Source: Macrostomum lignano
Taxonomy: Eukaryota
Assembly (NCBI GenBank): GCA_002269645.1
Contig: NIVC01003054.1
Location: 1 to 64,000, forward strand
Direction: 5' to 3'
Length of the DNA: 64,000 bases
In this document: positions 29,101-57,905 of the stretch, in pieces
How positions within the stretch are numbered: position 1 is the stretch's first letter
Layout: each line of letters opens with the position of its first letter
The notes under the pieces: model-generated
Database searches by the model: none
What the model saw: only the letters and a program-made list of their open reading frames with translations
What the model was told of the DNA's origin: nothing
Translations under genes and position numbers: made by a program

Positions 29101-32100
29101 TAAGCCGGTTGCTAAGCAACGGTTGGTAATATTTAGGATTGTCTGCTATACTCGTAGTGTAGATGCTTTAAAATTGCATTAGGACTCTTAATCGAGTTTA
29201 TTCTGGCGTAAAAATTATATAGTCAGTTTTCTGCAGATTTTTTATCAAATTCTGGCGTTGATTTCTAGTGATGCTTATTACAAGATTATTAATATTAATG
29301 ATTAGTTTGCACTTCTGGCATTTACGATTTTTAAGAACTTTATGGTGATTCATACATCATGATCTTTATGAAACTTGATGCTATTCAGTCTTCCTACTTC
29401 AGTACATTACCTTCAGGACCTTAATGATGCTTCAGGACCTTCATGATGCTTCAGGACCTTCATAGTGCTTCAGAACCTTCATGATGCTTCAGGACCTTCA
29501 TGATACTTCAGAACCTTCATGATACTTCAGGATCTTCATGATGCTTCAGGACCTTCATAATACTTCAGGACCTTCATGATACTTCAGGACCTTCATGATG
29601 CTTCAGGACCTTCATGATACTTCAGGACCTTCATGATACTTCAGGACCTTCATGATACTTCAGGACCTTCATGATGCTTCAGGACCTTCATGATGCTTCA
29701 GGACCTTCATGATGCTTCAGGATCTTCATGATACTTCAGGACCTTCATGATGCTTCAGGACCTTCATGATGCTTCAGGACCTTCATGATGCTTCAGGACC
29801 TTCATGATGCTTCAGGACCTTCATGATACTTCAGGACCTTCATGATACTTCAGGACCTTCATGATACTTCAGGACCTTCATGATGCTTCAGGACCTTCAT
29901 GATACTTCAGGACCTTCATGATACTTCAGGACCTTCATGATGCTTCAGGACCTTCATGATACTTCAGGATCTTCATGATACTTCAGGACCTTCATGATAC
30001 TTCAGGACCTTCATGATGCTTCAGGACCTTCATGATACTTCAGGATCTTCATGATGCTTTATCACATTCCAGAAATCAAAATCTCTTGAAATTTTTATAT
30101 GGTACTTCAAAATTATTAAATCCATATTATAAAATACTTACTTAATCCGTGCAAATTTTTTCGATCATCACTAACCTCAATTCCAACCAACCTTCAAACA
30201 AATTTCCAGCGTCAAGGAGTCGGTCTGGTCAAAAGGTGAGTACTTTTGTAAACACCAAAATGAAAAGAAAACTAATATTGTTACTAATAGTAGATACTAC
30301 AGTACATTTGCAGGTGGTTTTATTGTATCTGTATCAATTAATTTCTTATATTTCTACTATGAGTAGAGTACTTAATTCAATTTAATTATTTTTATTTTAT
30401 TCGTATGAAATTCTATTACTCTTACGTTGAGCATATAAAAAGCAAAACTTGAGCATTTTATTGTTCATTAAACTGCTACTCAACAAAAAACTATCAGAGG
30501 ACGGCGTCATCCGAATGCACCTGCGCGGCCGGCCTTTGAATCTGTACGCTCCATCGGATCTTGTTGAGCAGCTTCGCGACGTTCAACAAGTTGAGCCGGC
30601 CGAGCCACCCGCGGAGAAGCTCAAACTGGAGTGGGCCTACGGCTACCGCGGCCGGGACTGCCGCTCCAACTTGTACTCTCTGCCCACCGGCGAGATGGTC
30701 TACTTCATAGCCAGCGTGGTCGTGCTTCACAACGTTGAAGAGGGCATGCAGAGGCACTATACTGGCCACAATGACGACGTTAAATGCATTGCCGTTCATC
30801 CGGACAAGATCACTATAGCAACCGGACAGGTGGCCGGGCACGATAAAGCTCAGGGCAAGGTGAGGCTGGCTGCTAATAATATTTTTTGCGTTTGTTCTTT
30901 GTTCTTAATCGATTCTATACTGTATTTGTATGTTGTGGTTTTTCTTTGTAACAAGTGCTAAGCGACCTATTAAATTGCCCGAGGGTCGCCCTTATCTACC
31001 CGAGTGTCGCCCTTATCTACCTGAGAGTCGCCCTTATCTACCTGAGAGTCGCCCTTCCTGAGAGTCGCCCTTATCTACCCGAGTGTCGCCCATATCTACC
31101 TGAGAGTCGCCCTTATCTACCTGAGAGTCGCCCTTATCTACCTGAGAGTCGCCCTTCCTGAGAGTCGCCCTTATCTACCCGAGAGTCGCCCTTATCTACC
31201 TGAGAGTCGCCCTTCCTGAGAGTCGCCCTTATCTACCCAAGAGTCGCCTTTCCTGAGAGTCGCCCTTATCTACCTAAGAGTCGCCCTTATCTACCTGAGA
31301 ATCACCCTTATCTACCTGAGAGTCGCCCTACTTGAGAGTCGCCCTTATCTACCCGAGAGTCGCCCTTCCTGAGAGTCGCCCTTCCTGAGAGTCGCCCTTA
31401 TCTTCCTGAGAGTCGCCCTTATCTACCCGAGTGTCGCCCTTCCTGAGAGTCGCCCTTATCTTCCTGAGAGTCGCCCTTATCTACCAGAGAATCGCTCTTA
31501 TCTACCCGAGTGTCGCCCTTCCTGAGAGTCGCATTTCCTGAGAGTCGCCCTTCCTGAGAGTCGCCCTTATCTACCCGAGATTCGCCCTTCCTGAGAGTCG
31601 CCCTTATCTACTTATCTTATCTACTTATCTACTTATCTACCCGAGAGTCGCCCTTCCTGAGGGTCGCCCTTCATGAGAGTCGCCCTTCCTGAGAGTCGCC
31701 CTTATCTACCTGAGAGTCGCCTTTCCTGAGAGTCGCCCTTCCTGAGAGTCGCCCTTCTTGAGAGTCGCCCTTATCTACCTAAGAGTCGCCCTTATCTACC
31801 TGAGAATCACCCTTATCTACCTGAGAATCACCCTTATCTACCTGAGAATCACCCTTATCTACCTGAGAATCACCCTTATCTACCTGAGAGTCGCCCTACC
31901 TGAGAGTCGCCCTTATCTACGCGAGAGTCGCCCTTCCTGAGAGTCGCCCTTATCTACCTGAGAGTCGCCCTTATCTACCTGAGAATCACCCTTATCTACC
32001 TGAGAATCACCCTTATCTACCTGAGAGTCGCCCTACCTGAGAGTCGCCCTTATCTACGCGAGAGTCGCCCTTCCTGAGAGTCGCCCTTATCTACCTGAGA

Positions 32101-35100
32101 GTTGGGTTATCTAATTGAGAGTCGCCCTTATCTACCTGAGAATCGCCCTTATCTACCTGAGAGTCGCCCTACCTGAGAGTCGCCCTTATCTACGCGAGAG
32201 TCGCCCTTCCTGAGAGTCGCCCTTATCTACCTGAGAGTCGCCCTTCCTGAGAGTCGCCCTTCCTGAGAGTCGCCCTTATCTACCCGAGATTCACCCTTCC
32301 TGAGAGTCGCCCTTATCTACCTGAGACTCGCCCTTATCTACCCCAGAGTCGCCCCTATTTACCTTAAAGTCGCCCTTACCTACCTCAGAGTCGCCCTTAT
32401 CTACCTGAGAATCGCCCTTATCTACCTGAGAGTCGCCCTTATCTACTTCAGAGTCGCCCTTATCTACCCGAGACTCGCCCTTATATACCTGAGAAGCACC
32501 CCTCTATATCGACATTGACAAATAAATTTAGAGTTTAAAAAGCAGTTTTCTTATTTTTTTTCTGCTCAGAGTTTGGCATTCAGTTTGAGAAAGAAATTTG
32601 ACGCACTGAGCACCGCTTGGCAATGTTCGGTTTGTACCTTTAAGAATAGCAATTAACCATCTTAGCATCATGGAAATGTACCATCTTAGTAACTTGAAGT
32701 GTGCCTGCTTTGGAGTCTTTCTCTTCTAGCCAAAAAGAAGACAATCCAGCATGCTAAAGTTCTGAAAACATATTTTGAACTCTTAGGTTAGCCTAATCTT
32801 GCACAGAAAATTAGACATTTTACTTATCATATTTATAGCAGTCGCCTAGAGATGGCGCCGATATTGCTCTAGAGATGGCGCCGATATTGCCCTAGACATG
32901 GCACCGATATTGCCCTAGAGATGGCGCCGATATTGCTCTAGAGATGGCGCCGATATTGCCCTAGAGATGGCACCGATATTGCTCTAGACATGGCGCCGAT
33001 ATTGCTCTAGACATGGCGCCGATATTGCCCTAGACATGGCGCCGATATTGCCTTCACCGATATTGCTCTAGAGATGACGCCGATAGTGTCTTAGAGATGG
33101 CGCCGATATTGCCTTAAAGATGGCGCCGATAGTGTCTTAGAGATGACGCCGATATTGCCATAGAGATGGCGCCGATATTGCTCTAGAGATGACGCCGATA
33201 TTGCCCTAGAGATGGCGCCGATATTGCCTTAAAGATGGCGCCGATAGTGTCTTAGAGATGACGCCGATATTGCCATAGAGATGGCGCCGATATTGCTCTA
33301 GAGATGACGCCGATATTGCCCTAGAGATGGCGCCGATATTGCCTTAAAGATGGCGCCGATAGTGTCTTAGAGATGGCGCCGATATTGCTCTAGAGATGAC
33401 GCCGATATTGCCCTAGAGATGGCGCCGATATTGCCCTAGACATGGCGCCGATATTGCCCTAGACATGGCGCCGATATTGCCCTAGACATGGCGCCGATAT
33501 TGCTCTAGAGATGACGCCGATATTGCTCTAGAGATGACGCCGATATTGCTCTAGAGATGACGCCGATATTGCCCTAGACATGGCGCCGATATTGCCCTAG
33601 ACATGGCGCCGATATTGCCTTCGCCGATATTGCTCTAGAGATGACGCCGATAGTGTCTAAGAGATGGCACCGATAATGCTCTAGAGATGGCGCCGATATT
33701 GCCTTAAAGATGGCGCCGATAGTGTCTTAGAGATGACGCCGATATTGCCATAGAGATGGCGCCGATATTGCTCTAGAGCTGACGCCGATATTGCCCTAGA
33801 GATGGCGCCGATATTGCTCTAGAGATGGCGCCTATATTGCTCTAGAGATTGCGCCGATATTGCCCTAGAGATTGCGCCGATATTGCTCTAGAGATGGCGC
33901 CGATATTGTCTTAGAGATGGCGCTGATCTTTTCTTAGAGATGGCGCCGATATTGTCTTTGAGATGGCGCCGATATTGTCTAAGAGATGGCGCCGATCTTT
34001 TCTTAGAGATGGCGCCGATATTGCTCTAGAGATGGCGCCGATATTGCTCTAGAGATAGCTGATAACACCTGTGTATGCTCAGCGGTTCTGTAAAACCAGC
34101 ACCAAATATGCCAAAAGTTCGCACCGTCCTATAAAAAATATTTAGCCTTGTAAATAAACTCATTTTACTGAATTTGAAGCATGTAGTGTCTCAAATATTC
34201 GGATTCGTTTTTGCCATTTATAACTTATTCCATTGAGTCATTGGTGTGCTGATGCATTGAGTCATTGGTGTGCTGATGCATTGAGTCATTGGTGTGCTGA
34301 TGCATTGAGTCATTGGTGTGCTGATGCATTGAGTCATTGGTGTGCTGATTCATTGAGTCATTGGTGTGCTGATGCATTGAGTCATTGGTGTGCTGATGCA
34401 TTGAGTCATTGGTGTGCTGATGCATTGAGTCAATCCTTAATGTAATTATCAAGTGCGACTCTGATGTACAATACTTACCTAATGAGGCATCATACAATGA
34501 GACTCACCAACCCCTCAACAACTGCTCGGATTCCGGCAGCCACACGTCCGAGTGTGGAACAGCGTGGACCTGACCACCATGCACGTGCTCGGCCTCGGAG
34601 ACTTCGAGCGGGCCGTGTGCTGCTTGGCCTTCAGCCGAGCCGACGGCGGCAATTTTCTCTGCGCCGTAGACGAGTCCAACGAGCACATGATCTCCGTTTG
34701 GGACTGGCGCAAGCCGCACAAGCTGGCCGAGACAAAGACTTCTGGCGATCCTGTGCTGGCCTGCGAGTACCACCCGTTAGATAATGGCAGTATTGTGACC
34801 TGCGGCAAGAACCAGCTCACCTTCTGGACTATAGAGGGCGGTCAGCTGTCTAAGAAGAATGGAATTTTTGAGGTAGAACACAAAAGTCACGTGTTTCTTC
34901 TCGCTATGTTTGAGTTTTTGTTAGCCAATGAAATATTTGTACTTGAAGATCGATCGCATTAGCAGCCAATTGGAACAGTTCTAGCTCAGGGATGATTTCT
35001 CAGCCAATAGGAATGGTTCTAGCTCAAGGTCGACTTTCCAGCCAATAGGAACAGCTCTAGCTCAGGAATCATTTCTCAGCCAATAGGAACAGTTTTAGCT

Positions 35101-38047
35101 GAAGGTCGACTTCTCAGCCAATACAAACAGCTCTAACTCAAGGTCAATTTCTCAGCCAATAAGAACAGTTCTAGCTGAAGGTCGACTTCTCAGCCAATAG
35201 GAACAGTTCTAGCCCAGGGATGACTTCTCAGCCAATAGGAACAGTTCTAGGTAAGGTCGAGTTCCTAGCCAATAGAAACAGTTATGACTCGAGCGAGAAT
35301 AAATTGATAACTGCTTTAATAACCAATATTTCGCGCAGAAGCACGAGAAGCCAAAATTTGTTCTCTGCTTAACATTCGCACAAAATGGCGACTTGATCAC
35401 GGGCGACTCCAACGGCAACATCCTGGTCTGGGCCCGGGGCGGGAACAGAATCAGCCAGGGTGTCACTGGCGCTCACGAGGGCGGAATTTTTAGCCTGTGC
35501 GTGCTAAAGGACGACAACCTGGTGTCGGGCGGCAAGGACCGCCGCCTGGTGCAGTGGGACGCCACTTACAACCGAACTGGCTCGGAGGCTGCCATCCCCG
35601 AGCAGTACGGACCAATCAGGACTCTGTCACAGGGGCCCGGCAGTGTTGTACTGGTTGGCACCACTAGGAATTGCATTCTGCAGGTGAGTTCTGCTAGGAG
35701 TTTACACAATGGATTTACATGCTCATAATGGTGTGTTAGAAACAGGATGATGTTGGTAAACGGGATGGTGTTGGTGAATAAGATGGTGTTGGTGAATAGG
35801 ATGGTGTTGGTGAACGGAATGATGTTGGTGAACAGGATGGTGTTCGTGAACAGGATGATGTTGGTGAACAGGATGGTGTTGGTGAACAGGATGGTGTTGG
35901 TGAACAGGATAGTGTTGGTGAACAGGATAGTGTTGGTGAACAGGATGGTGTTCGTGAACAGGATGATGTTGGTGAACAGGATGGTGTTGGTGAACAGGAT
36001 GGTGTTGGTGAACAGGATAGTGTTGGTGAACAGGATAGTGTTGGTGAACAGGATAGTGTTGGTGAACAGGATAGTGTTGGTGAACAGGATAGTGTTGGTG
36101 AACAGGATGGTGTTGGTGAATAGGATGGTGTTGGTGAATAGGATGATGTTGGTGAACAGGATGGTGTTGGTGAACAGGATGGTGTTGGTGAACAGGATGG
36201 TGTTGGTGAACAGGATAGTGTTGGTGAACAGGATGGTGTTGGTGAATAGGATGATGTTGGTGAACAGGATGATGTTGGTGAATAGGATGGTGTTGGTGAA
36301 CAGGATGGTGTTGGTGAACATGGAAACTTTTATTTCTGAATTAAAGCATCCTATTGCTAAGGGTTGCGATCGATCGCCTTGCAGGGCTCCTTCAACCTGG
36401 ACTTCTCTCCCATTGTGGAGGGCCACGTCGAGGAGCTGTGGGGCCTGGCCTGCCACCCCAGCCAGCTGCAGTTCGCCACCTGCGCCTATGACAAATGGAT
36501 CTACCTGTGGGACGCGCTCACCCATCAGGTTGTGTGGAGCAAAGAGCTTAACGACCCGGCCCATTGTGCCTGCTTTCATCCCAGCGGCGAGACTCTGGCT
36601 GTGGGCTGCCAGACCGGCCGCTGGTACGTGCTGGATGCGCAGCGGCGCGACATTGTGGCTGTGCACACTGACGGCAATGAGCAGATTGAGTGCATGGAGT
36701 TCTCGCCCGGTGAGTGTTGCTGATGATAATTGGCGCTTATCTACCCCTATCCCTGCTGCTTTAATTGGCGCTTATCTACCCCCTATCCCTGCTGATTTAT
36801 TTGGCGCTTATCTACCCGCTATTCCTGCTGATTTAATTGGCGCTTATCTACCCCCTATCCCTGCTGATTTATTTGGCGCTTATCTACCCCCTATTCCTGC
36901 TGATTTAATTGGCGCTTATCTACCCCCCTATTCCTGCAGACTTAATTGGCGCTTATCTACCCCCTATTCCTGCTGATTTGATTGGCGCTTATCTACCCCC
37001 CTATTCCTGCTGACTTAATTGGCGCTTATCTACCCCCTATTCCTGCTAATTTGATTGGCGCTTATCTACCCCCCTATTCCTGCAGACTTAATTGGCGCTT
37101 ATCTACCCCCTATTCCTGCTGATTTGATTGGCGCTTATCTACCCCCCTATTCCTGCTGACTTAATTGGCGCTTATCTACCCCCTACTCCTGCTAATTTGA
37201 TTGGCGCTTATCTACCCCCTATTTTTGCTGATTTAATTGGCGCTTATCTACCCCCTATTCCTGCTGATTTGATTGGCGCTTATCTACCCCCATTCCTGCT
37301 TCAATTGGCGCTTATCTACCCCCTATTCATGCTGATTTGATTGGCGCTTATCTACCCCCTATTCCTGCTGACTTAATTGGCGCTTATCTACCCCTAATCC
37401 TGCTTCAATTGGCGCTTATCTACCCCCTATTCCTGCTTCAATTGGCGCTTATCTACCCCTATTCCTGCTTCAATTGGCGCTTATCTACTGCCCCCACCGC
37501 CTCGCCAGACGGCTCCATGCTCGCCCTGGGCTCCCGCGACAACTACCTGTACGTGTACACCTGCTCCGAGGCCGGCCGCAAGTACTCCCGTGTTGGCAAA
37601 TGCTGCGGCCATTCGTCATTCGTTACCCACCTGGACTGGTCGGTCGATGGTACCAGCCTGCGCTCGAACTCCGGCGACCATGAGCTGCTGTTCTGGACCG
37701 CCGCCAACTGCCGCCAGGTGCCCGCGGCGGCCACTTTGCGCGACGTGGCCTGGGCTACCCAGCGCTGCACCCTGACCTTCCACACTGCCGGAATCTGGCC
37801 GGAGGGAGCCGACGGCACCGATGTCAACGCGTGCGATCGGAACTCCGGCCACAGCCTGCTAGCCAGTGGAGACGACTTTGGCCAGGTGTGTCTGTTCAGG
37901 CATCCCTGCTATCAGGCCAAGTCGCGAAGCCACGCCTACGGCGGCCATTCGAGTCACGTGGCTAATGTGCGCTTCCTGCGCGACGACTCCAGGCTGCTGT
38001 CCGCTGGCGGGCGCGACTCCGCGGTGTTGCAGTGGGAGATTCTGTGA
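23181..38047 (+). CDS. EML: Echinoderm microtubule-associated protein-like (EML1-4 type); join(23181..23331,[24038..24112],25292..25546,28403..28715,30210..30235,30498..30859,34540..34872,35339..35683,36385..36709,37509..38047), 882 aa (907 with the optional exon)
   Basis: Trimerisation coil [30 protein letters not shown] motif MHLRGRP...[21 protein letters not shown]40 blades ending [15 protein letters not shown]. All splice phases join in frame. The two 5' exons are less certain. Confidence 0.93.
24038..24112 (+). CDS. Optional or alternative-first EML exon ([24 protein letters not shown])
   Basis: tttgcag acceptor, GTAAGT donor, 75 nt phase 1-1, ATG at 24040. LDDSATS resembles the LDDSISA segment preceding the coil in EML4. 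Confidence 0.6.
25692..27330 (+). repeat. 20-bp polypyrimidine minisatellite, EML intron
   Basis: Unit TATCCCTCTCTCCTCCTCCC, ~80 copies. Confidence 0.97.
27975..28325 (+). repeat. 27-bp minisatellite, EML intron
   Basis: Unit CAGGGCTGGTGGCAGGCACTGAAGGGT, ~13 copies. Confidence 0.96.
29410..30058 (+). repeat. 19-bp minisatellite, EML intron
   Basis: Unit TTCAGGACCTTCATGAT(G/A)C. Confidence 0.96.
30975..32495 (+). repeat. Mixed 21/16-bp minisatellite, EML intron
   Basis: Units CTGAGAGTCGCCCTTATCTAC and CCTGAGAGTCGCCCTT. Confidence 0.95.
32845..34058 (+). repeat. 23-bp CpG-containing minisatellite, EML intron
   Basis: Unit CTAGAGATGGCGCCGATATTGCC. Confidence 0.96.
34230..34431 (+). repeat. 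24-bp minisatellite, EML intron
   Basis: Unit CATTGAGTCATTGGTGTGCTGATG, ~8 copies. Confidence 0.95.
34962..35280 (+). repeat. 38-bp minisatellite with a CCAAT box, EML intron
   Basis: Unit CAGCCAATAGGAACAGTTCTAGCTCAAGGTCGACTTCT-like. Confidence 0.9.
35745..36322 (+). repeat. 18-bp minisatellite, EML intron
   Basis: Unit GATGGTGTTGGTGAACAG. Confidence 0.96.
36727..37495 (+). repeat. ~36-bp minisatellite, last EML intron
   Basis: Unit TTAATTGGCGCTTATCTACCCCCTATTCCTGCTGAT. Confidence 0.95.
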
Positions 38048-41154: not shown

Positions 41155-43743
41155 ATGGCAACTCAGCCAGCCGCTGACTACCCGTTCTACATCGTGGACG
41201 CTTTCACGAAGCGCCTCCGACGGGGGAACTCCGCGGCTGTGGTGCTCCTGACGCCTGAGCCGCTGCTCAGCGACTCCGACATGCAGTCCGTTGCCGCTGA
41301 GTTCAACCTGTCCGAGACCGCCTTCGTCTTCCTTGCCTCCGGCTCCGCTGCCCCCGACCGGCCCGTCCCGCTGCGCTGGTTCACTCCGGAGTGCGAAGTG
41401 GCGCTGTGCGGCCACGCCACCCTGGCCGCGGCCACCGCCGTGCACCTGCACCTGCGGGCCAGCGGCCGCGACTGCGACCGACTCGAGTTCGACACTATGA
41501 GCGGCCTGCTGCCAGTGACCAGGTGCTGGGGCCAGCTTGTTGTCGTGCGGTGTTGGTCTGTCTTTCGCTATGCTCTCCGCTGTACCCTCCACTTTCCCCT
41601 TCACTTTGTCCTCCGCTCCCTCCATTTCACCCTCCGCTCTACCCTCCATTCTACCCTCCACTCTACCCTCCATTCTAACCTCCATTCTACCCTCCGCTCT
41701 CCCTCCACTTTACCCTCCACTCTGCCCTCCATTCTCCCTCCACTCTACCCTCCACTCTGCCCTCCACTCTGCCCTCCACTCTACCCTCCACTCTGCCCTC
41801 CACTCTGCCCTCCACTCTACCCTCCACTCTGCCCTCCATTCTCCCTCCACTCTACCCTCCACTCTGCCCTCCACTCTGCCCTCCACTCTACCCTCCACTC
41901 TGCCCTCCACTCTGCCCTCCACTCTGCCCTCCACTCTACCCTCCGCTCTCCCTCCACTCTCCCCACTCTCCCTTCACTCTACCTCCACTCTACCTTCCAC
42001 TCTCCTTCCACTCTCCTTCCTCTCTACCCTCCACTCTACCCTCCACTCTACCCTCGGCTATACCCTCCACTCTACTCTTCGCTCTACCTCCACTCTACCT
42101 CCACTCTACCTTCCACTCTCCTTCCACTCTCCTTCCTCTCTACCCTCCACTCTACCCTCCATTCTACTCTCCACTCTACCCTCCATTCTATCCTCCATTC
42201 TACCCTCCGCTCTCCCTCCACTTTACCCTCCACTCTGCCCTCCATTCTCCCTCCGCTCTACCCTCCATTCTACCCTCCACTCTACCCTCCATTCTAACCT
42301 CCATTCTACCCTCCGCTCTCCCTCCACTTTACCCTCCACTCTGCCCTCCATTCTCCCTCCACTCTACCCTCCACTCTGCCCTCCACTCTGCCCTCCACTC
42401 TACCCTCCACTCTGCCCTCCACTCTGCCCTCCACTCTGCCCTCCACTCTACCCTCCGCTCTCCCTCCACTCTCCCCACTCTCCCTTCACTCTACCTCCAC
42501 TCTACCTTCCACTCTCCTTCCACTCTCCTTCCTCTCTACCCTCCACTCTACCCTCCACTCTACCCTCCACTCTACCCTCGGCTATACCCTCCACTCTACT
42601 CTTCGCTCTGCCCTTCACTCGGCCATTCACTCTTCCCTCCACTCTCCGCTCAACGCTTCGGTCTGGCCATCGCCGCACCGCACTCTTCACGTATGCGGAT
42701 GTTCAAATCCCAAAGTTCAGGCTTGTAATTTCTGAAAAAAGCCAGGACAGCAATGTACGCACCGTGTCATTTCGAGTCATTCCTATCCGGCTACCCCCCT
42801 CCCCCCGAAAAAATATGTGGCAGAGACGCCGCCACAGGGCAGTGGAGCCTGGACTTCCCGCTGGGCACCGTGGAGCCAATCGCGATGGGCGATCGAGACG
42901 CTTCGGCCGCACTGCTGGAGTCTGCTCTCGGCGACGAACTCGGAGTCAACTCCGTCCTGAGCCTGGCCCATTCGCCTGACCGGCAGAAGCTGCTCATTGA
43001 ACTGAAACCCGAGGCGCGTGACCAGTTTCTGCGGCTCCGGCCCGACACTGCCGCCATGGTGGCCGCGGCGCCAACAGGGCAGCGGATTCGCGGGGTGATT
43101 GTCACCGTCAGCGGCGAGGGGTTTCGAGAGCGGGATGGATATGGTGAATGATCCTTTTGAGGGACTGACAGTGTTGCGCATAGGGCGGTTATAGTGCCGG
43201 TCATAGTGTTGCTCATAGTTTCGGTCATAGTGTTGCTTATGGTGTCGGTCATAGTGTTGCTCATAGTGTCGGTCATAGTGTTGCTCATAGTGTCGGTCAT
43301 AGTGTCGGTCATGGGGTCAGTCAAAGTGTTGCTCATTCCTCATAGTATTTGTCAAAATTGCTCATAGTTTTTCTGATTGCATGGGTCACATGTTGCTCAT
43401 AGTTTTGCTAATATTGGCTCATAGCATCAGTCATACGTGCAGTGCCGTCTTTTACAAACCAAACAGCAACTCCCAAAATATTTCGCCAGACAGCGGAGAA
43501 TTCGACTTTCTGTCGCGCTACTTCGCTCCCTGGGTCGGCATCCCGGAGGACCCGGTGACCGGGGCTGCTCACACGGTTCTGGCGGCCTATTGGCGGGCCA
43601 AACTCGGCGGGCGGGACGAGATGCTGGCCAAGCAGTGCAGCCGGCGGGGCGGGGTGCTGCGGCTCCGTGTGGACGCCGGCCGTGGCCGGGTGGCGCTCAC
43701 CGGACACTCGGTTATGTCTGCGCACGGCCGGGTGGCGATATGA
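41155..43743 (+). CDS. PBLD: PhzF/PBLD-family isomerase; join(41155..41522,42824..43143,43490..43743), 313 aa
   Basis: [65 protein letters not shown] are PhzF/DAP-epimerase-fold hallmarks. The exon 2 donor (43143, GTGAAT) is the least certain boundary; a GC donor after 43113 is also in phase. Confidence 0.92.
41575..42655 (+). repeat. 12-bp C/T-rich minisatellite, PBLD intron 1
   Basis: Unit CTCT(A/G)CCCTCCA with larger duplicated blocks. Confidence 0.95.
43195..43335 (+). repeat. 12-bp minisatellite, PBLD intron 2
   Basis: Units TCATAGTGTTGC / TCATAGTGTCGG. Confidence 0.9.
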
Positions 43744-46847: not shown

Positions 46848-47154
46848 CATACATGCGCAACCTCTGAAATTATGCTGGCCAAGCAACTTAGTTTTGACCA
46901 AAAATGCAACTTTGTTTTGCAACTTATCTGCTTCTTTTTGCAACTTAGTTTGCTTCTTTTGCGACTTGTTTTTCTTTTGCTTCACCATTTTTACTTCCCT
47001 GAACTGCTTTTTTCTTTTTCTCTTTCCTCTTGCCTTTCTTTCTTGGTTCTTGTGTTTTCTGTTTTTGATCAACTCAAATTTGCAACTTACCACTGGTCAA
47101 CCACCATTTATGGTGGCTGGATCGGCTAGGTTGGCCAGCAGTTGCGCATGTATA
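46848..47154. mobile_element. 307-bp MITE, same terminus as the 6007 element, 110 bp upstream of the NPC1 ATG
   Basis: Ends CATACATGCGCAAC / GTTGCGCATGTATA, inner TGCTGGCCAA / TTGGCCAGCA, perfect 8-bp TSD TTAGTAAT (46840-46847, 47155-47162). Confidence 0.85.
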
Positions 47155-47264
47155 TTAGTAATGGATTTTAATCTAAGTTCTAAAGCACTAACCAATTTTA
47201 GTTTTTATGTTTCTTATGTTTATTAAAGTTGCTAGTTTTTATAACTATATGTTTCCTATTTCTG

Positions 47265-50200
47265 ATGAAAACCATTTTGACAATTAGTTTATTCCTTGCC
47301 ACCTCTGTTCAATTGGTAAGCTTTTCTTAAAATTTTATTTTGCTCTGACATATTTTAGTTTTTAGGCTGGTTATAACAAAATTTCATAAATTATCCATCT
47401 CAGATTGATACCAGTTGTGTTTGGCACAATGAATGCGGCCGGCATCCAGAAACAGGCAAGCCACTCAACTGCAAGTACAGTGGGCCACCCCAGCCTCTGA
47501 CCAACTCCAGTGCACTCAACACCCTGGCTCAACTGTGCCCAGAGATGCTGGACAGCCGCATGCGCGGACCAGATGGGCATCCGCAGCTGTGCTGCTCAGC
47601 CAGCCAGGTCCTGTCACTCAGCGCTGGCATCGGCAATGCTGGCATGCTGTTCAAGCGCTGCCCGAGCTGCTGGCGCAACTTCCGCACCCTCTACTGCCAG
47701 TACGCTTGCTCACCGCGGCAGCACGAGTTCCTGCGCGTAGTTGAGACCGACCCAGCTAGTAAGGGAGTGCTGCGAATTGACTACACAGTGAGTCGGCAGT
47801 TTGCCGAGGGCATGTTCAACAGCTGCAAAAGTGTCACAATGGGCAATGGCAAAGCTATCGGCAGTCTGTGCACCCCTGTGCCAGCTGAGGATTGCAAAGT
47901 CACGGATGTGTTCAACTTTCTGGGAAGTCCCGCCATAAACCCGTACGCACCGTTCGTGACTAAATTCCACGTCACAGACAACGCCTGCGCCGCTCAGGAC
48001 CAACCAGGCAGGACTCGACGGTCTGTTGATAGCGAATTTGACTTTGGCGACTTTGACTTTAATCCGGTGACGACTGCGCTGCCCCAGACCGCCGATGGTC
48101 GCAGTGGCGCCACTCCAACCAGCGTTGTTAGTAAAACTCCTGTCACCAATGCAGATTCCAGTGCTGGCAGTAACAAATCAACTGTGACAACACAAACCAC
48201 AATGACTACTAAGACAACCACTGCAGCTGACATGTGCGGCATGAACGCCAAGGTGGTGCCCTGCCAGACCGGATTCAACGGCCAGTCGGCCTGCTCCTGC
48301 ATCGACTGTCCGGCCGTGTGTTCCGCAGCTTCCGCCGGATTCGACAACGATTTGGCTGCACTGCAAAGCAGCGGCTCCTCCAACACCTGGCGAGTTCTCG
48401 GCATCAGCGTCTGGTACATCTGCCTGGCCATTGCCTATGCGGCCTTCATTGTGGCATTCGCCGCCTCCAACCTGTACTTCCACGTCTACTCGCCTCCGTC
48501 GAAAAAGTCCTCGTCTTCGCCGATGCGTCATCAGCGCGACGTTGTCGACGATGCCACCGCCGCAGCCGCCGTTGCCGTCGATAACGAACTGATCGTTGAT
48601 GATCCAGCCGATGCGGCGGCCGCCGAAGCTGCAGCCGCCTCCGCTGCGGCCACCTCGGACAGCTGTCCGAACGGCGTGACCTTCGGCATGACTTCGCCGA
48701 GCAGCCGGGAGTGCTTCCTGCCGCACCAGACCCACCAGCCGCTCAGCCGCTCCGAGGCCGCTCTGGTTGCTGGCGCCAAGTCGTCGAATTCTTCTTCATC
48801 ATCGTCTGGCGCCGAGTCCGAGAGGCTGTGCGCCGGCTTTGATCGGCGAATTGAATCCGTGTTTGCGGCCTGGGGTCGGGCGGTGGCCGGGCACCCCGTG
48901 CTGGTGCTCACACTTGGGTTGCTGGCCTGCCTGGGCCTCAGCTGCGGCATCATCCGCTTCCAGGTCACCACCGACCCTGTGGACCTGTGGAGCGCTCCAG
49001 ACAGCACTGCCAGGCAGCAGAAGGAGTACTTTGATGCGCACTTCGGGTGAGCCGCTGCGATATCACTGTGCGCCTTGCTCGCCAAATCCTCAGTTGCCGG
49101 GCCAGCCTCCCAGATCCTCAGTCGCTAGGCCAGCCTCCCAGATCCTCAGTTGCTAGGCCAGCCTCCCAGATCCTCAGTTGCTAGGCCAGCCTCCCAGATC
49201 CTCAGTTGCTAGGCCAGCCTCCCAGATCCTCAGTTGCTAGGCCAGCCTCCCAGATCCTCAGTTGCTAGGCCAGCCTCCCAGATCCTCAGTTGCTAGGCCA
49301 GCCTCCCAGATCCTGAGTTGCTAGGCCAGCCTCCCAGATCCTCAGTTGCTAGGCCAGCCTCCCAGATCCTCAGTTGCTAGGCCAGCCTCCCAGATCCTGA
49401 GTTGCTAGGCCAGCCTCCCAGATCCTCAGTTGCTAGGCCAGCCTCCCAGATCCTCAGTTGCTAGGCCAGCCTCCCAGATCCTCAGTTGCTAGGCCAGCCT
49501 CCCAGATCCTGAGTTGCTAGGCCAGCCTCCCAGATCCTCAGTTGCTAGGCCAGCCTCCCAGATCCTCAGTTGCTAGGCCAGCCTCCCAGATCCTGAGTTG
49601 CTAGGCCAGCCTCCCAGATCCTCAGTTGCTAGGCCAGCCTCCCAGATCCTCAGTTGCTAGGCCAGCCTCCCAGATCCTGAGTTGCTAGGCCAGCCTCCCA
49701 GATCCTGAGTTGCTAGGCCAGCCTCCCAGATCCTGAGTTGCTAGGCCAGCCTCCCAGATCCTGAGTTGCTAGGCCAGCCTCCCAGATCCTCAGTTGCTAG
49801 GCCAGCCTCCCAGATCCTGAGTTGCTAGGCCAGCCTCCCAGATCCTCAGTTGCTAGGCCAGCCTCCCAGATCCTGAGTTGCTAGGCCAGCCTCCCAGATC
49901 CTCAGTTGCTAGGCCAGCCTCCCAGATCCTCAGTTGCTAGGCCAGCCTCCCAGATCCTCAGTTGCTAGGCCAGCCTCCCAGATCCTGAGTTGCTAGGCCA
50001 GCCTCCCAGATCCTCAGTTGCTAGGCCAGCCTCCCAGATCCTCAGTTGCTAGGCCAGCCTCCCAGATCCTCAGTTGCTAGGCCAGCCTCCCAGATCCTGA
50101 GTTGCTAGGCCAGCCTCCCAGATCCTCAGTTGCTAGGCCAGCCTCCCAGATCCTGAGTTGCTAGGCCAGCCTCCCAGATCCTGAGTTGCTAGGCCAGCCT

Positions 50201-53200
50201 CCCAGATCCTCAGTTGCTAGGCCAGCCTCCCAGATCCTCAGTTGCTAGGCCAGCCTCCCAGATCCTCAGTTGCTAGGCCAGCCTCCCAGATCCTCAGTTG
50301 CTAGGCCAGCCTCCCAGATCCTCAGTTGCTAGGCCAGCCTCCCAGATCCTCAGTTGCTAGGCCAGCCTCCCAGATCCTGAGTTGCTAGGCCAGCCTCCCA
50401 GATCCTGAGTTGCTAGGCCAGCCTCCCAGATCCTCAGTTGCTAGGCCAGCCTCCCAGATCCTCAGTTGCTAGGCCAGCCTCCCAGATCCTCAGTTGCTAG
50501 GCCAGCCTCCCAGATCCTCAGTTGCCGGGCCGCAGCCTGATACTGTATCAGTTTGATTTTCCAATTGTAAAATATGATTATCTTATTAACCCACGCTTAT
50601 CAAAGCAATCATTGCATGCAAAATAAACACGGTGTGGGTATTTACTCAGCAACCAGCTATCAGTTATGTCATTTAGATTGATAAATTAGCCTTGATTGAA
50701 TAATTAGTTAGTTTGGTGACAATCAAGAGGAAGTGAATAGGTTAAATTTCATGCAGTTGTTTCAGTTAAAACTTATCGATTGCATTATGTTAACGGTAGC
50801 TTTGACAGCAGCTGGCCGCTGCAACTTATATGGGGTTGGTAGATCTGCACTGTCGCGCCATTTTATAAAGTCTATAAGCTTGTTTGAGTTATATTAAACA
50901 GTAAACCGCTTGACCGGGCACAGCTGTGTGCCCTTAACTCAGTCCTTGCGTGTACTTCACTCCTCCTATGTGTGTTTATTGACTATAATACTTTTAACAT
51001 TAGGTTATAATATTGTAAAGGAAAATATGCATACTACTGAGATGTGGCAAAGGGAATGAATGGATTAAATCAGATGAGAAGGATTTATCCTGATCTTCCC
51101 TTCTCTCTCCTTTCCCGTCCGTTCCCTTCCCTGTCCGTCTCTGGGCCGTTTCCCATAGCAACGCGCTAACCAAGGTCTTCTCTCTTGATGGGGAGAGTTC
51201 TATTTTTAGCTCCAGTTAGTTGTACACAAGCTTTCTGCGATTTTGGGATAGAGAGTGGGGCCGCTCTCTCCTGATGGCGTGATGCACTTTACGCCTCTCA
51301 TCTCAGCGCCTTTGTCAGCTGTGAGATTCGATTCTGGTCAGGGCTTTCCAGTCCAGATTCTCTTTTTCAGTAGTCCCTGGCTTAGAATGCAGGACAGGGG
51401 GGTCAGGCGTGTGAGTCATCGCTTGGCACCGAAGTGTGTCCGAATTTGGGGTTCTTCTGCGCCAACTTTTTAGTATTTTTCTCTTCACTAAATATGTTTA
51501 ATGAAGGTTGAGGGTGGGCGGGCTTTGTAGGCGGGTGGCCTGATGCTGGTTGCAAATAGTCCTGACCTTTTTTGAATTGTGCAGTGCGGGGGGGTCCTAC
51601 GCAAGGGTTGGATATTTTTATTTAGAAACTTGTATCATTCAACTTGTAAATTTTTATGCTAAATATTTTTTAAATTATCCTTGTTCTCACTCTTAGATTA
51701 CAAGTCTCACTCTTAGATTACAAATCTCATTCACAGATTGCAAATCTCTTTCCCAGATTACAAAATCTCATTCCCAGATTGCAAATCTTAGTCCCAGAGT
51801 AAAAATCTCACTGTCACATTAAAAATCTCACTCCCAGAATACAAATCTCACTTTTAGATTACAAATCTCACTCCCAGATTACAAATCTCACTCTTAGATT
51901 ACAAATCTCACTCTTAGATTACAAATCTCACTCCCAGATTACCAATCTCACTCTTAGATTACAAAATCTCACTCCCAGATTACAAATCTCTCTCTTAGAT
52001 TACAAATCTCACTCCCAGATTACAAATCTCACTCTTAGATTACAAATCTCACTCTTAGATTACAAATCTCACTCCCAGATTACCAATCTCACTCTTAGAT
52101 TACAAAATCTCACTCCCAGATTACAAATCTCTCTCCTAGATTACAAATCTCACTCTTAGATTACAAAATCAATTGTCAAACTTTCTTCAACAAACCGCCA
52201 GGCCGTTCTTCCGCACGGAGCAAGTGATCATCATCCCCAGGAACCAGAGCCCGGTGCCCATCAGTTCCTATGACTACTACGACTTGCCAAAGCACAAACA
52301 ACTTGGGCCAGCGCTGAGCAAAAGCTTTCTTAAACGGGTGCTACAGCTGCAGTTAGATGTAGTCAATCTGTCTGTGAAGAGTTCGCTTGGCACAGCGAAC
52401 ATCACCCTGTCGGATATCTGCTTCAAGCCGCTGGCTCCTGACTACACTACCTGCGCTGTGCAGAGTCCGCTCGGATATTTTCAGGTGCGTCTTTGTCACT
52501 CTCGATTGCAATAAAAGGGGTGACATTTTGAGATTGTCACTCTCGATTTGAGATTGTCACTCTCGATTTGAGATTGTCACTCTCGATTTGAAATTGTCAC
52601 TCTCGATTTGAAATTGTCACTCTCCATTTGAAATGGTCACTCTCCATTTGAAATGGTCGCTCTCGATTTGAGATTTTCACTCGATTTTAGATTGTCAGTC
52701 TCGATTTGGGATTTTCACTCTCGATTTGAGATTTTCACTCTCGATATGAGATTGTCACTCTCGATTTGAGATTGTCACTCTCGATTTGAAATTGTCACTC
52801 TCCGTTTGAAATGGTCACTCTCCATTTGAAATGGTCGCTCTCGATTTGAGATTTTCACTCGATTTGAGATTGTCAGTCTCGATTTGGGATTTTCACTTTC
52901 GATTTGAGATTTTCACTCTCGATATGAGATTGTCATTCTCGATTTGAGATTGTCACTCTCGATTTGAGATTGTCCCTCTCGATTTGAGATTGTCCCTCTC
53001 GATTTGAGATTGTCACTCTCGATTTGAGATTGTCACTTTCGGTCTGGGAGAGTCACTCTCGATTTGAGATTGTCACTCTCATTTTGAGATTGTCACTCTC
53101 GATTTGAGATTGTCACTTTCGGTCTGGGAGAGTCACTCTCGATTTGAGATTGTCACTCTCATTTTGAGATTGTCACTCTCGATTTGAGATTGTCACTCTC

Positions 53201-56200
53201 GATTTGAAATTGTCACTCTCGATTTGAGATTGTCACTCTCGATTTGAGATGATTGTCACTCTCGATTTGAGATTGCCACTCTCCATTTGAGATTGTCACT
53301 CTGGAGTGGGAAGGTGAGATTTCGGAGATTATATAATTATTGGTTATTATTTATTCATGCACTCGCAGTCCAACATGAGCCGCCTGATGCAAGTGAAATA
53401 TGACGAAGAGATGCTGGCCATGGACACGCACCTCATCGTTAGCGACTGGTGGATGCACATGTCCGCCTGCACCGACAATCCCATGGGACCGTCGTGCCTA
53501 TCCGAGTGGGGCGGCCCCATCAACCCCGCCGTAGTGTTTGGAGGCTACAATGGCTCGGAGTTTTTGAATGCTAGCGCGATTGTCCTGACTTTCTTGGTTA
53601 GCAACGACCCCGCTGTGAGGCAGAAGGCTATCGACTGGGAGGCCGGCTTCATGGAGGTCGTGCGGAGGTTGGTTTTGGGCTCTGGCGTGGGGAATGAGGG
53701 GCGTGAGAAATGCAGGCATGAAAAAGAACAGACAGATGAGAAAGAACAGACAGATGAGAAATGCAGGCATGAAAAAGAACAGACAGGTGAGAAATGCAGG
53801 CATGAGAAAGAACAGACAGATGAGAAATGCGGGCATGAGAAAGAACAGACAGATGAGAAATGCAGGCATGAGAAAGAACAGACAGGTGAGAAATGCAGGC
53901 ATGAGAAAGAACAGACCGATGAGAAATGCAGGCATGAGAAAGAACACAGGTGAGAAATACAGGCATGAGTAAGAACAGACAGGTGAGAAATGCAGGCATG
54001 AGAAAGAACAGACAGATGAGAAATGCAGGCATGAGAATCGGCCCCTCCAACCCGCAGACACGCCAGCTCTCACGAAGACCTGTGGGACATTCGCTACCGC
54101 AGCGAGCGCAGCATCCAGGATGAACTGGAGCGGGAGTCGCACTCGGATGTTCTGACCATCCTCATCAGCTATTTAGTGATGTTTGGCTATGTGACAGTCA
54201 CCCTAGGCCAGTACAAGTCCTGCTCAAGGGTTATGATAGATTTGAAAATCACTCTAGGCTTGGCCGGAGTTGTCATCGTACTGCTGGCCGTGTCTTCATC
54301 TCTGGGAGTCTGGAGTTTCCTGGGCTATCCGGCCACCCTCATCATAGTGGAGGTGGTGCCGTTCCTGGTGCTGGCAGTCGGGGTTGACAACATCTTCATC
54401 TTGGTGCAGGCCTATCAGCGGGACTACAGCGCCTGCACGGATTCGGTGGAGTCGCGCGTGGCTCGGGCTGTTGGCCGGGTCGGGCCCAGCATGCTGCTGT
54501 CCAGCGCTAGCGAGTCTGTTGCCTTCTTCTTCGGAGCTCTGACACCGATGCCAGCTGTCCGAGTGTTCGCCCTGTACGCTGGCATGGCTGTGCTGATTGA
54601 CTTCCTGCTGCAGATCAGCTGCTTTGTGGCTCTGCTCACTCTCGACTGCAAGCGACAGGCATCTGCCAGGTGAGTTGCTTTATTAGCTTGTCACAATGGC
54701 TAGCGACTGACCTCCTGCGCTGCCAGGCTCTTCGGGGTATTTATAGGGTGGGTATTTGTAGGGCTATTCTAGGGTATTTATAAAGGTATTCTAGGGGTAT
54801 TTATAGGGGTATTCTAGTGTATTTCTAGGGGTATTCTAGGGTATTTCTAGGGCTATTCTAGGGTATTTATAGGGGTATTCTAGGGTATTTATAGGTATTC
54901 TAGGGTATTTATAGGGGTATTCTAGGGTATTTGCAGGGGTATTCTAGGCTATTTATAGGAGTATTCTAGGGTATTTATAGGATTATTTGTAAATGTATTC
55001 TAGGGGTATTCTAGGGGACATTCTAGGTGTATTTCAAGGTATTCTGGAGTTATTCTAGGGATATTTCTTGGGGTTTTCTAGGTGTATTTGTAAGACATGT
55101 ATTCTAGGGATGCTTCTAGAAGTGGATGCAGAAGGGCAATGACCTAGGGGCTATTTCTAAGAAAAGCTACAGTCGATATTTCAGGGGTATGTTACAGGGG
55201 GGTATTTCAGGGGTATGTTACAGGGGGGTATTTCAGGGGTATGTTACATCGGGTATTTCTGGGGTATGTTACAGGGGTATTTCTGGGGTATATTACAGAG
55301 GGTATTTCTGGGGTATATTACAGGGGGTATTTCAGGAGTATGTTACAGGGGGGGTATTTCAGGGGTATGTTACAGGGGGGGGTATTTCAGGGGTATGTTA
55401 CAGGGGGGTATTTCAGGGGTTTGTTACATCGGGTATTTCTGGGGTATGTTACAGGGGTATTTCTGGCGTATATTACAGAGGGTATTTCAGGGGTATGTTA
55501 CAGGGGGTATATCTGGGTACATATTTGAGCTGGGTACTTTAGTAGGGTGCTGAGAAGGCATTACAGCGACAGCAAAAGGAATAATTTTGACTGATGCTAA
55601 TACATAATGTACATGATGCGATGCTCATCTCCAGATTCGACATGCTGTGCTGCCTGAGCAGCAAGTCGCAGCCCATGTCCAGCCGGCCCGAGGACAGCGC
55701 CACGGTGAAGTCGGAGAGCCGCGGCTTTCTATTCCAGCTGTTCAAGCGCCACCTGTCCCGCGTGCTGTTGTCCCCAGTCTGCCGACCAGTTGTTATCCTA
55801 GCATTTGTCAGCTGGGCATTCGTGTGCCTGGCTGCCATTCCGGGCATTCGCAGCGGCCTGGACCAGGAAATCAGCATGCCAGTAGACAGCTACATGATCG
55901 GATACTTTGATGGAGTGAAGAAATACCTGAGCGTCGGACCGCCCGTTTACTTTGTACTGGCTGGCCAGGGTATCGATTTCTCTCGGCCAGCTCACGCCAA
56001 GCTGGTGTGCGGCCGGGCCGGCTGTCCTCAGGACTCCATGATGAGCCGGTTGTCGCGGCTGTCCAAGCCCGACCGGCAGTCGGTGTCGTATCTGGCCACT
56101 CCGGCCAGCTCGTGGCTTGATGACTACGTGGACTGGCTCAGCCCGAGCGGCTCTGGCAGCGGGGTGCAGTGCTGCCGCTATCGAGCTGGGAAGCCGCATC

Positions 56201-57864
56201 AGTTCTGCCCAGCCTCCCTGGGCCCTCAGCCAGACTGCACCGGTTGCCAGGTGAACTTCACCACCAGCAGCAGCAGCTCCTGGCCGGATGCCAGCAGTTT
56301 CTATGGCTACCTGGACTTTTTCCTTCGCGACAATCCCGGAGTTGCCTGCGCCAAGGGAGGCCACGCCGCCTACGCCAACGCGGTGTCCCTGGAGCGGCAA
56401 TCGTCACAGCCTGGCAGTAGCAAAGTGTCCGCAGTGTCAGCCTCTCATTTCATGGCCTACCATTCTGTGCTGAGAACTGACTCCGACTTCACCAACGCTT
56501 ACCGATCGGCTGTCGCCATATCCGATGGCATCAATGCTAATTTCAAACGCCAGCTGGGTCGCGAGCCCGAGTTCAAGGTGTTCCCCTATAGCGTGTTCTA
56601 CGTGTTCTACGAGCAGTACCTGACTATTGCCAAGGATACGTTTACTAACTTGAGCATCTGCGCAGCTGCCATTGCCGTTGTGACTTTTGTCCTGCTAGGG
56701 CTGGATCTGTACGCTACCGTCATTATTATGCTCACTATTGGCCTCATACTCAACTCTATGTTAGGCCTGATGTACTTCTGGGATATCACCTTGAATGCCG
56801 TGTCTTTGGTTAATCTTGTCATGGTGAGTTTTGTTTGTGTTGCTTTTAGCTATGGATAAGGATGAGTGTGACCCAGGAGTAATATGAGACAGGTGAGATT
56901 AGCAGAGAGACAGGTGCGATTAGCGTAGAGACCAGTGAGATTCTCAGAGAGACAGGTAAGATTCTCAGAAGGACAGGTAACATTCGCAGAGAGACAGGTG
57001 AGATTCTCAGAGGGACAGGTGACATTCTCACAGAGACAGGTGACATTCTCAGAGAGATAGGTGACATTCTCAGAGAGACAGGTGAGAATTTCGGAGAGAG
57101 GTGAGATTACCAGAGAGACAGGTGAGATTTTTAGAGAGACAGATGAGATTCCCAGAGACAGGTGAAATTCTCGGAGAGAGGTGAGATTAGCAGAGAGACA
57201 GGTGAGATTAGAAGAAAGACAAGTGAGATTAGGAGAGAGACAGCTGAGATTCCCAGAAAGACAGGTGAGATTAGCAGAGAGACAGGTGAGATTCTCAGAG
57301 AGACAGGTGAGATTCTCAGAGAGAAAGATGAGATTAGGAGAGCGAAAGGTGAGATTAGGAGAGCGAAAGGTGAGATTAGGAGAGCGAAAGGTGAGATTAG
57401 GAGAGCGAAAGGTGGCATTATCAATGAAATGGTGGGATTATCAATGAGATGAGTGAGATTATCAATTAAATGGCAAGCCTTTAAAGGATTCCGAATTGCC
57501 ACTCGATCCGCAGGCGCTGGGCATCTCAGTGGAGTTCTGCTCCCACATGGTTCGCGCTTTCACCGTGTCCGAGGAGCCAACCAGGCTGCTGCGCGCTCGC
57601 GAGTGCTTCATCCACATGGGCAGCTCCGTGTTCTCCGGCATCACCCTCACCAAGCTGGGCGGCATTGTGGTGCTGGGCTTCGCCAAGTCCCAGCTGTTCC
57701 GCATCTTCTACTTCCGCATGTACCTGGGCATTGTGCTGTTCGGAGCGCTGCACGGCCTCGTGTTCCTGCCTGTGCTGCTCAGCTATGTTGGTGAGTGCGG
57801 ACAGGCAGACAGACGACAGACAGACAGACAGACGACAGACAGACACACAGACAGACAGACAGGC

Positions 57865-57905
<41 letters not shown>

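Follow-up and report, generated by a model that had tools for sequence, protein, structure and literature searches.

A long low-complexity insert, bracketed by two extra cysteines, in the N-terminal domain of an NPC1 paralogue of Macrostomum lignano

An 85-codon segment was found to interrupt the sterol-binding N-terminal domain encoded by an NPC1 gene of the flatworm Macrostomum lignano. The gene lies on the forward strand of a 64,000-nucleotide stretch of DNA (positions 1 to 64,000 of contig NIVC01003054.1, assembly GCA_002269645.1), which is hereafter called the window. The segment occupies positions 47983-48237, in frame with the flanking NPC1_N sequence. I favor, with a probability of roughly 0.6, the reading that a surface hairpin has undergone a genuine, lineage-specific expansion, which is tolerated in one NPC1 paralogue of M. 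lignano. The gene that carries it looks functional and is apparently intact.

The segment is bracketed by two extra cysteine residues. The first one (Cys195, counted from the isoleucine encoded at 47404) is encoded by 47986-47988 at the proximal base of the putative loop, and the second one (Cys278) is encoded by 48235-48237 at its distal base. The 82 residues between them (47989-48234) are predicted to be disordered. They include an RTRR sequence (48010-48021), which is a furin/proprotein convertase-type R-X-R-R motif and is followed by Ser-Val (48010-48027 for the whole), an acidic/aromatic peptide of 11 residues (48028-48060), and a mucin-like Ser/Thr/Pro tract with a single N-K-S sequon (48061-48228). 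The segment then ends with D-M-C. The RTRR motif, the acidic/aromatic peptide, the Thr/Ser-rich tract, and the two terminal cysteines had been listed in a preliminary description of this DNA, and each of them was found where it had been placed. The alignment to human NPC1 also upheld the placement of the segment between the human sequences ending in VFSD and beginning with PMNNATKGC. The length of about 80 residues given there is to be corrected to a net gain of about 79 residues relative to human NPC1 and about 75 residues relative to a paralogue of M. lignano.

The composition of the insert is uneven. The first third is poor in Ser and Thr (3 of 24 residues), while the mucin-like tract makes up the last two thirds; in this tract, 24 of 56 residues are Ser or Thr and four are Pro, which gives a Ser/Thr/Pro content of 50% (28/56). 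Neither Tandem Repeats Finder nor a direct-repeat scan found tandem repeats within 48061-48228. Thus, the tract resembles a mucin-type (Pro/Thr/Ser) domain in its high Ser/Thr/Pro content and predicted disorder, and it is non-repetitive. As a side observation, the sequon in the insert (around 48172-48180) is new, while a sequon that adjoins the loop in the paralogue (N-E-S, P0002 residues 224-228) reads N-A-K in the window (48241-48249). The human NPC1 sequon at this old site is N-A-T. Since only 29 of 84 homologues carry a sequon there in a crude test, its loss is of doubtful significance and was set aside as a change in a conserved feature.

The history of the cysteine pair can be read from the M. 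lignano paralogue (PAA85170.1, BOX15_Mlig025683g3), which is 46-47% identical over the N-terminal domain. Its sequence at the corresponding site is PFDIKFSLEDQ-C-FTIDGKMH-C-PMNESSVQC. Thus, eight residues (FTIDGKMH) separate the two extra cysteines, and neither an RTRR motif nor a Ser/Thr tract is present. BLASTP pairs the second extra cysteine directly (residue 278 in the window protein and 223 in the paralogue), while the first one, Cys214 in the paralogue, is offset from its window counterpart by one residue. In an AlphaFold2 model of the paralogue (47-sequence alignment), two strands (215-217 and 220-222) lie around a D-G turn, with block values of the predicted local distance difference test (pLDDT) of 95-97. 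In this model, Cys214 and Cys223 would be cross-strand neighbors at the base of a β-hairpin, with textbook geometry for a disulfide bond. The paralogue's N-terminal domain is encoded in a single exon after an intron that follows the signal peptide, as in the window gene, and the paralogue locus has no intron at the insert site. Since the paralogue has the pair around an eight-residue hairpin and no intron there, the pair probably predates the insert, which would be an expansion within a stapled hairpin. Loss of the pair in close relatives had been named as a result that would speak against the preliminary description; the pair is present in this paralogue, the only close relative available.

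The paralogue gene has irregularities of its own. Its locus (L001, 10001-11030) lies at the end of contig NIVC01000342.1 of the same assembly, GCA_002269645.1. The gene model changes frame after CSCSDCQAVCPKNQ, and the first transmembrane segment (TM1), GIDGWYIVMAAIYVSFLVVFAAWNIYFF, is readable in another frame. The frame switch is due either to an indel in the assembly or to a genuine frameshift. The locus stops about 1 kb beyond the switch, at the contig end, and the model is truncated there.

The window domain was modeled in the same way (AlphaFold2, 49-sequence alignment). The pLDDT exceeds 90 nearly throughout outside the insert and is below 50 at residues 206-258. The block mean falls from 79 (residues 191-200) to 48 (residues 201-210), just where RTRR lies (residues 203-206), and confidence is recovered by residues 271-280, with values back at 83-96 from the Cys278 region. 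Isolated bridge or strand residues occur at 194 and at 279-280, each adjoining an extra cysteine. Foldseek matched the model to 3gkh (E=2e-19, target TM-score 0.85) as well as to NPC1L1 and yeast NCR1. Thus, the structure prediction that had been proposed as a check returned a disordered insert in a confidently folded domain. In human NPC1, the counterparts of the two cysteine positions fall in a short turn (LPV-HGM-EP), at a distance of four residues, which is consistent with both ends of the insert being adjacent in space. As modeled, both ends emerge from one point, so that the insert is a loop rather than a stalk, and it could not raise the domain. The mucin-like stalk of the preliminary description is thus better replaced by a loop closed by cysteines and pinned at one point.

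How the loop relates to the rest of the domain may be seen from NPC1L1. In the NPC1L1 N-terminal domain, nine conserved disulfides constrain the fold, and domain A (residues 22-242) and domain B (residues 243-265) have a second linkage in the interdomain disulfide C113:C254 (PMC3078110). The window protein has both cysteines of this interdomain bond, and its insert sits directly ahead of domain B. The conserved disulfide that had been named as spanning this site in human NPC1, C97-C238, matches the interdomain bond by an offset of +16, in what I take to be the human numbering. A cut in the insert would interrupt the primary chain between domain A on one side and domain B with the membrane body on the other; the interdomain bond and, provided that it forms, the hairpin staple would still connect the two parts. 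The earlier argument for a disulfide-held molecule is sound in this respect, as both interdomain cysteines are present and the staple pair is shared with the paralogue, the pairing itself being a prediction.

Is such a loop found elsewhere in the family? I measured the loop that extends from the conserved PF motif as far as the CxCxxC motif in the best homologues that HMMER gave in an exhaustive search of 1.84 billion cluster representatives; 84 domains were compared, that of the window included. The stretch is 114 residues long in the window protein versus 19-48 residues (median 40) in the other 83 N-terminal domains, and the insert has no counterpart among these 83. A single cysteine is present in the stretch in 81 of the 84 domains, and three cysteines are present only in the window protein and the M. 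lignano paralogue. The basic motif is also rare. R-X-[KR]-R occurs 22 times in 89,317 residues of 155 NPC1 homologue sequences (0.25 per 1000 residues), which gives an expectation of about 0.02 for an 85-residue segment. Besides RTRR, no further motif of this type is present in the conceptual protein of about 1476 residues, and the other 83 loops have none. The best match in the HMMER search was the paralogue, 47% identical, and no orthologue was found among the representatives. A word-indexed protein search gave no match for the N-terminal domain with the insert, while exon 6 gave only matches of at most 50% identity, none of them named M. lignano. With the whole exon-2 product as query, this search yielded only a fragment gene model of M. 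lignano (UniRef A0A1I8F8T8, P0001), with low-complexity words saturating the candidate list. An exact-product look-up of this fragment and of the 501-residue open reading frame (ORF) of the window returned no contig; the paralogue locus was recovered in the same manner. Taken together, these searches gave neither an orthologue nor a homeologue nor a transcript.

Several features bear on the origin of the insert. SEFDF and GDFDF in the acidic/aromatic peptide are encoded by two copies of a 15-nt unit (48032-48060, 1.9 copies) with 92-93% identity, according to Tandem Repeats Finder and the direct-repeat scan. The GC content at third codon positions (GC3) is 0.47 in the insert versus 0.68 upstream and 0.77 downstream in exon 2. 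Exon 2 also encodes another low-complexity expansion, which contains 15-nt repeats and lies in the cytosolic loop that joins TM1 to TM2. A eukaryotic fragment of an NPC1 N-terminal domain from a JGI metagenome contig (P0029) resembles the window protein in having a long, acidic, Ser/Thr-rich, low-complexity insert in the loop between strand β7 and subdomain B; in contrast to the window insert, it has no flanking cysteine pair and no basic motif, and its sequence is unrelated. Since P0029 carries such an insert, this loop seems to tolerate them independently. A repeat or mobile element as the source was rejected because blastn found no further copy of the insert in the window or in the paralogue locus, and an exonized intron of the paralogue was rejected because the paralogue has no intron at this position. 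The 15-nt duplication, the low GC3, the second expansion, the insert of P0029, and the absence of another copy in the two loci together suggest slippage-driven low-complexity growth at an insertion-tolerant site. The peptide that had been proposed to become a new N-terminus is thus, with its 1.9-copy duplication, better explained as a young slippage product than as a conserved functional peptide.

The following course of events may be proposed. The ancestor of both M. lignano paralogues may have gained two cysteines at the base of a short hairpin after strand β7, at the transition from the sterol-binding subdomain A to the small Cys-rich subdomain B. In the window gene, the eight-residue hairpin would later have been replaced or expanded by about 82 low-complexity residues, at least partly via replication slippage. 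Because the loop base would be stapled and subdomains A and B tied by the interdomain disulfide, the sterol-binding fold is probably insulated from the insert. The loop would then be a tolerated appendage, probably glycosylated, that contributes to the glycan coat in the lumen and hardly affects sterol transfer. In this scheme, the sequence features, the identity of the domain, the outlying length of the loop, the sharing of the cysteine pair, and the predictions of disorder and of a hairpin are results of the analysis, while I infer the disulfide pairing, the glycosylation, any cleavage, and the functional neutrality.

The expansion of a hairpin presupposes that the segment is translated. If it were wholly or partly a cryptic or alternatively spliced intron, the mature protein would have a short loop like that of the paralogue. 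The GC3 of the insert, lower than that of its flanks, would fit an intron, and a scan of the 53 in-frame GT..AG pairs that are 40 nt or longer in 47940-48270 gave one passable pair (TTA|GTAAAA at 48131 to CTGCAG| at 48226, 96 nt), which would trim a part of the Thr-rich tract. However, this candidate is weak and leaves RTRR and both cysteines intact, and among the 53 pairs, none of those that span the insert has consensus-like signals; removal of the whole insert was set aside on this ground. The coding frame is the only one of the six frames that is open over the 255 nt, and same-base shuffles are open in only 2.7% (P ~0.027). The GC content is 53% in the insert versus about 31% in the upstream intron, the cysteine codons at both ends match the pair of the paralogue and are thus fixed as coding, and the independent UniRef model A0A1I8F8T8 starts within the insert. 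An intron is therefore quite improbable. Relaxed constraint in a non-functional paralogue, or a mis-assembly, can be given hardly any weight. M. lignano has many recent duplicates, the only matching database model is the UniRef fragment, no M. lignano model over the N-terminal domain or exon 6 was found, and the candidate for exon 1 with a signal peptide is weak. Against this, the seven exons contain about 4.4 kb of coding sequence without stops or frameshifts and with canonical splice sites, all 18 cysteines of the N-terminal domain are retained, and the exon for the sterol-sensing domain scores E=5e-52. Moreover, the UniRef model, despite its substitutions and frameshifts elsewhere, has the same sequence at the C-terminal end of the insert.

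The more serious question is the role of RTRR. It may be a selected site for furin or another proprotein convertase, and a functionally required cleavage in the trans-Golgi network or endosome would give a disulfide-linked two-chain NPC1; the cut might lift a steric barrier beside the sterol pocket, as for the C-loop of Dispatched, or expose a new N-terminus. The motif is canonical: P4, P2, and P1 are Arg, P1′ is Ser, and P2′ is Val. No second such motif is present in the protein, and few occur in the family; RTRR should be accessible in its disordered, Ser/Thr-poor segment, and the staple and the interdomain bond would hold the two chains. R-X-[K/R]-R is thus present as in a convertase substrate, and luminal, flexible exposure is predicted from homology and the pLDDT. 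There is also a precedent in the superfamily: in Dispatched, a flexible loop of the first extracellular domain must be cleaved by furin (PMC8630017). On the other side, the motif by itself is weak evidence, the paralogue as the sole close relative lacks the entire insert, and the would-be N-terminal peptide is a recent tandem duplication. The insert looks young and weakly constrained from its GC3, and exon 2 carries another low-complexity expansion that is apparently neutral. Furin dependence has also been called unique to Dispatched among RND proteins (PMC8630017). My search of the literature found no description of an insert in an NPC1 N-terminal domain or of convertase processing of NPC1, and was uninformative on the convertases of M. 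lignano. Two-chain cleavage by furin is thus a plausible and reasonable hypothesis in view of the sequence, while a selected site behind it seems unlikely. All NPC1 molecules traverse the trans-Golgi network, and convertases of the kexin/furin type occur widely across Metazoa. That some molecules are nicked at or near RTRR, by a furin-like convertase or by endolysosomal proteases, is a real possibility, if somewhat short of even odds. That such a cut is a selected and functionally needed event is rather doubtful, and it is more doubtful still that furin-like maturation gives a two-chain transporter in which the sterol-binding subdomain is tethered by disulfides alone and loop opening is needed for sterol hand-off.

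The tolerated expansion of a hairpin is therefore preferred, and several points weigh against it. A single well-formed R-X-R-R|S-V would be a chance event of about 2% per 85 residues, and it lies in the glycan-poor, disordered part of the insert, just as a functional processing site would look. The pairing of the two cysteines comes from predicted secondary structure rather than from coordinates or chemistry, namely from the hairpin register of the paralogue and the bridge residues beside both cysteines in the window model. The neutrality of the insert, RTRR, and the Thr tract is presumed, and the place of the whole segment in the mRNA is read from the genomic sequence. The signal-peptide exon is weak, so that the gene model is uncertain at its 5′ end.

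Comparison with known proteins places the insert in context. The window protein shares with human NPC1 (N-terminal domain, 3GKH; full length, 3JD8 and 6W5R) and NPC1L1 (N-terminal domain, 3QNT) the fold, the 18 cysteines forming nine disulfides by homology (including the interdomain bond), the PF motif before strand β7, and the order of TM1, middle luminal domain, sterol-sensing domain, and C-terminal domain. At the loop, human NPC1 has eight residues (LPVHGMEP) in contrast to 87 in the window protein, and it has no extra cysteine pair, no basic motif, and no Ser/Thr tract. Dispatched (Disp1) is similar in having a flexible, unresolved luminal/extracellular loop with a furin site; its fragments stay together after cleavage, and the uncleaved loop has been proposed to be a steric or topological barrier (PMC8630017). 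However, the Dispatched site lies between TM1 and TM2 in the first extracellular domain (ECD1), and the window protein has no such site there, its RTRR being in the NPC1-specific N-terminal domain upstream of TM1. The Dispatched fragments are held non-covalently, and cleavage was shown experimentally at a conserved site, whereas the window protein offers the motif alone. Flatworm NPC1 paralogues, such as NPC1A and NPC1B of cestodes, arise by lineage-specific duplication and have disordered inserts relative to the human proteins, but these inserts are cytosolic and outside the N-terminal domain, and no processing site has been proposed for them (PMC11391042). There is also no one-to-one correspondence between the flatworm paralogues and vertebrate NPC1 and NPC1L1 (PMC11391042).

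There is evidence that platyhelminths, including free-living ones, have no de novo sterol synthesis (PMC11391042). Since flatworms reportedly lack this synthesis, their NPC1 paralogues are central to sterol acquisition, and those of parasitic relatives have been considered as drug targets. The NPC1 N-terminal domain is a highly conserved module for sterol binding, and the stapled loop would show where a large insertion is tolerated, which may be useful for tagging or engineering NPC1. It may also serve as a natural test of the need for covalent continuity between subdomains A and B. If cleavage were true and required, this NPC1 would join Dispatched as the second proteolytically activated member of the Patched/RND superfamily and would be the first one from the NPC1 branch. 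At present, it is a lineage-specific curiosity of one paralogue in one species, known from sequence and prediction.

The gene model extends on the forward strand over at least seven exons, and every exon junction is GT-AG. Exon 1 (47110-47157, MVAGSARLASSCACIL, donor GTAATG) is tentative; it encodes a weak candidate signal peptide and is the sole ATG-plus-hydrophobic candidate whose donor phase fits the acceptor of exon 2. Exon 2 (47404-49046) has its acceptor cag| at 47401-47403 and its donor GG|GTGAGC at 49047; its reading frame is open from 47377 and meets a stop shortly 3′ of the donor. This exon encodes the N-terminal domain with the insert, followed by TM1, an enlarged cytosolic loop, TM2, and the first part of the middle luminal domain. 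Pfam NPC1_N (PF16414) covers residues 4-194 of its product (E=1.7e-50), and a PDB sequence search aligned residues 4-187 with human NPC1 23-205 (3gkh, E=2.6e-26) and again at the C-x-C-x-x-C tail. The N-terminal domain has 20 cysteines, of which 18 are at canonical family positions and two are the extra pair. Subdomain A, the sterol-binding one (47404-47982, approximately human 23-212), has 13 of the conserved cysteines, and subdomain B (48238-48321, beginning with GMNAKVVPC) has five, the equivalents of human C227, C238, C240, C243, and C247.

The linker from the last cysteine of the N-terminal domain to TM1 (48322-48400) has no poly-proline stretch. In human NPC1, the linker ahead of TM1 is Pro-rich, with poly-proline; the window protein has another sequence in its place. 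TM1 is a hydrophobic stretch at approximately 48400-48480, assigned by homology with the human topology, and the cytosolic loop between TM1 and TM2 (approximately 48481-48900) is an Ala/Ser low-complexity sequence (AAAAVAVD...) with 15-nt repeats at 48607-48656 and is about 90 residues longer than that of human NPC1. Exons 3 (52202-52484) and 4 (53369-53667) encode the middle luminal domain (NPC1_MLD, PF22314), exon 5 (54058-54669) the sterol-sensing domain (PF12349), and exon 6 (55635-56823) TM7-8, the C-terminal luminal domain, and TM9-11. Thus, the middle luminal, sterol-sensing, and C-terminal parts are in canonical order. Exon 7 (57514-57790) encodes the last transmembrane segments, and its perfect donor, G|GTGAGT at 57791, suggests one further short 3′ exon, as yet unlocated, with the true C-terminal tail. 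According to tblastn, the exons are colinear with full-length NPC1 proteins over residues ~24-1317. The UniRef fragment A0A1I8F8T8 is the sole close database match and is nearly identical to the window apart from its substitutions and frameshifts.

Some features of the non-coding parts were also noted. A 28-nt unit is repeated 4.2 times (94% matches) at 49082-49200, about 35 nt 3′ of the exon-2 donor, and the first kilobase of the intron after exon 2 has a GC content of about 61%, unlike the AT-rich upstream intron. At 57790-57900, exon 7 reads on into a GACA-type microsatellite (DRQTDRQT...).

Elsewhere in the window, the longest ORF (25653-27437, 594 residues) is a satellite with a 25-residue (~75-nt) unit repeated about 23 times and is not a gene. 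Two adjoining ORFs at 5074-6162 encode a Mos1-type helix-turn-helix (PF17906) and a partial DDE transposase domain (PF01359), and this locus looks like a degraded mariner-family element. An exon with a KIN17 winged-helix-like domain (PF10357) lies at 20218-20628. A multi-exon gene for an echinoderm microtubule-associated protein-like (EML) protein, with the HELP motif and both EML β-propellers, extends over approximately 30449-38047 on the forward strand, and a PhzF/PBLD-like ORF (PF02567, E=1e-29) was found at 41155-42297.

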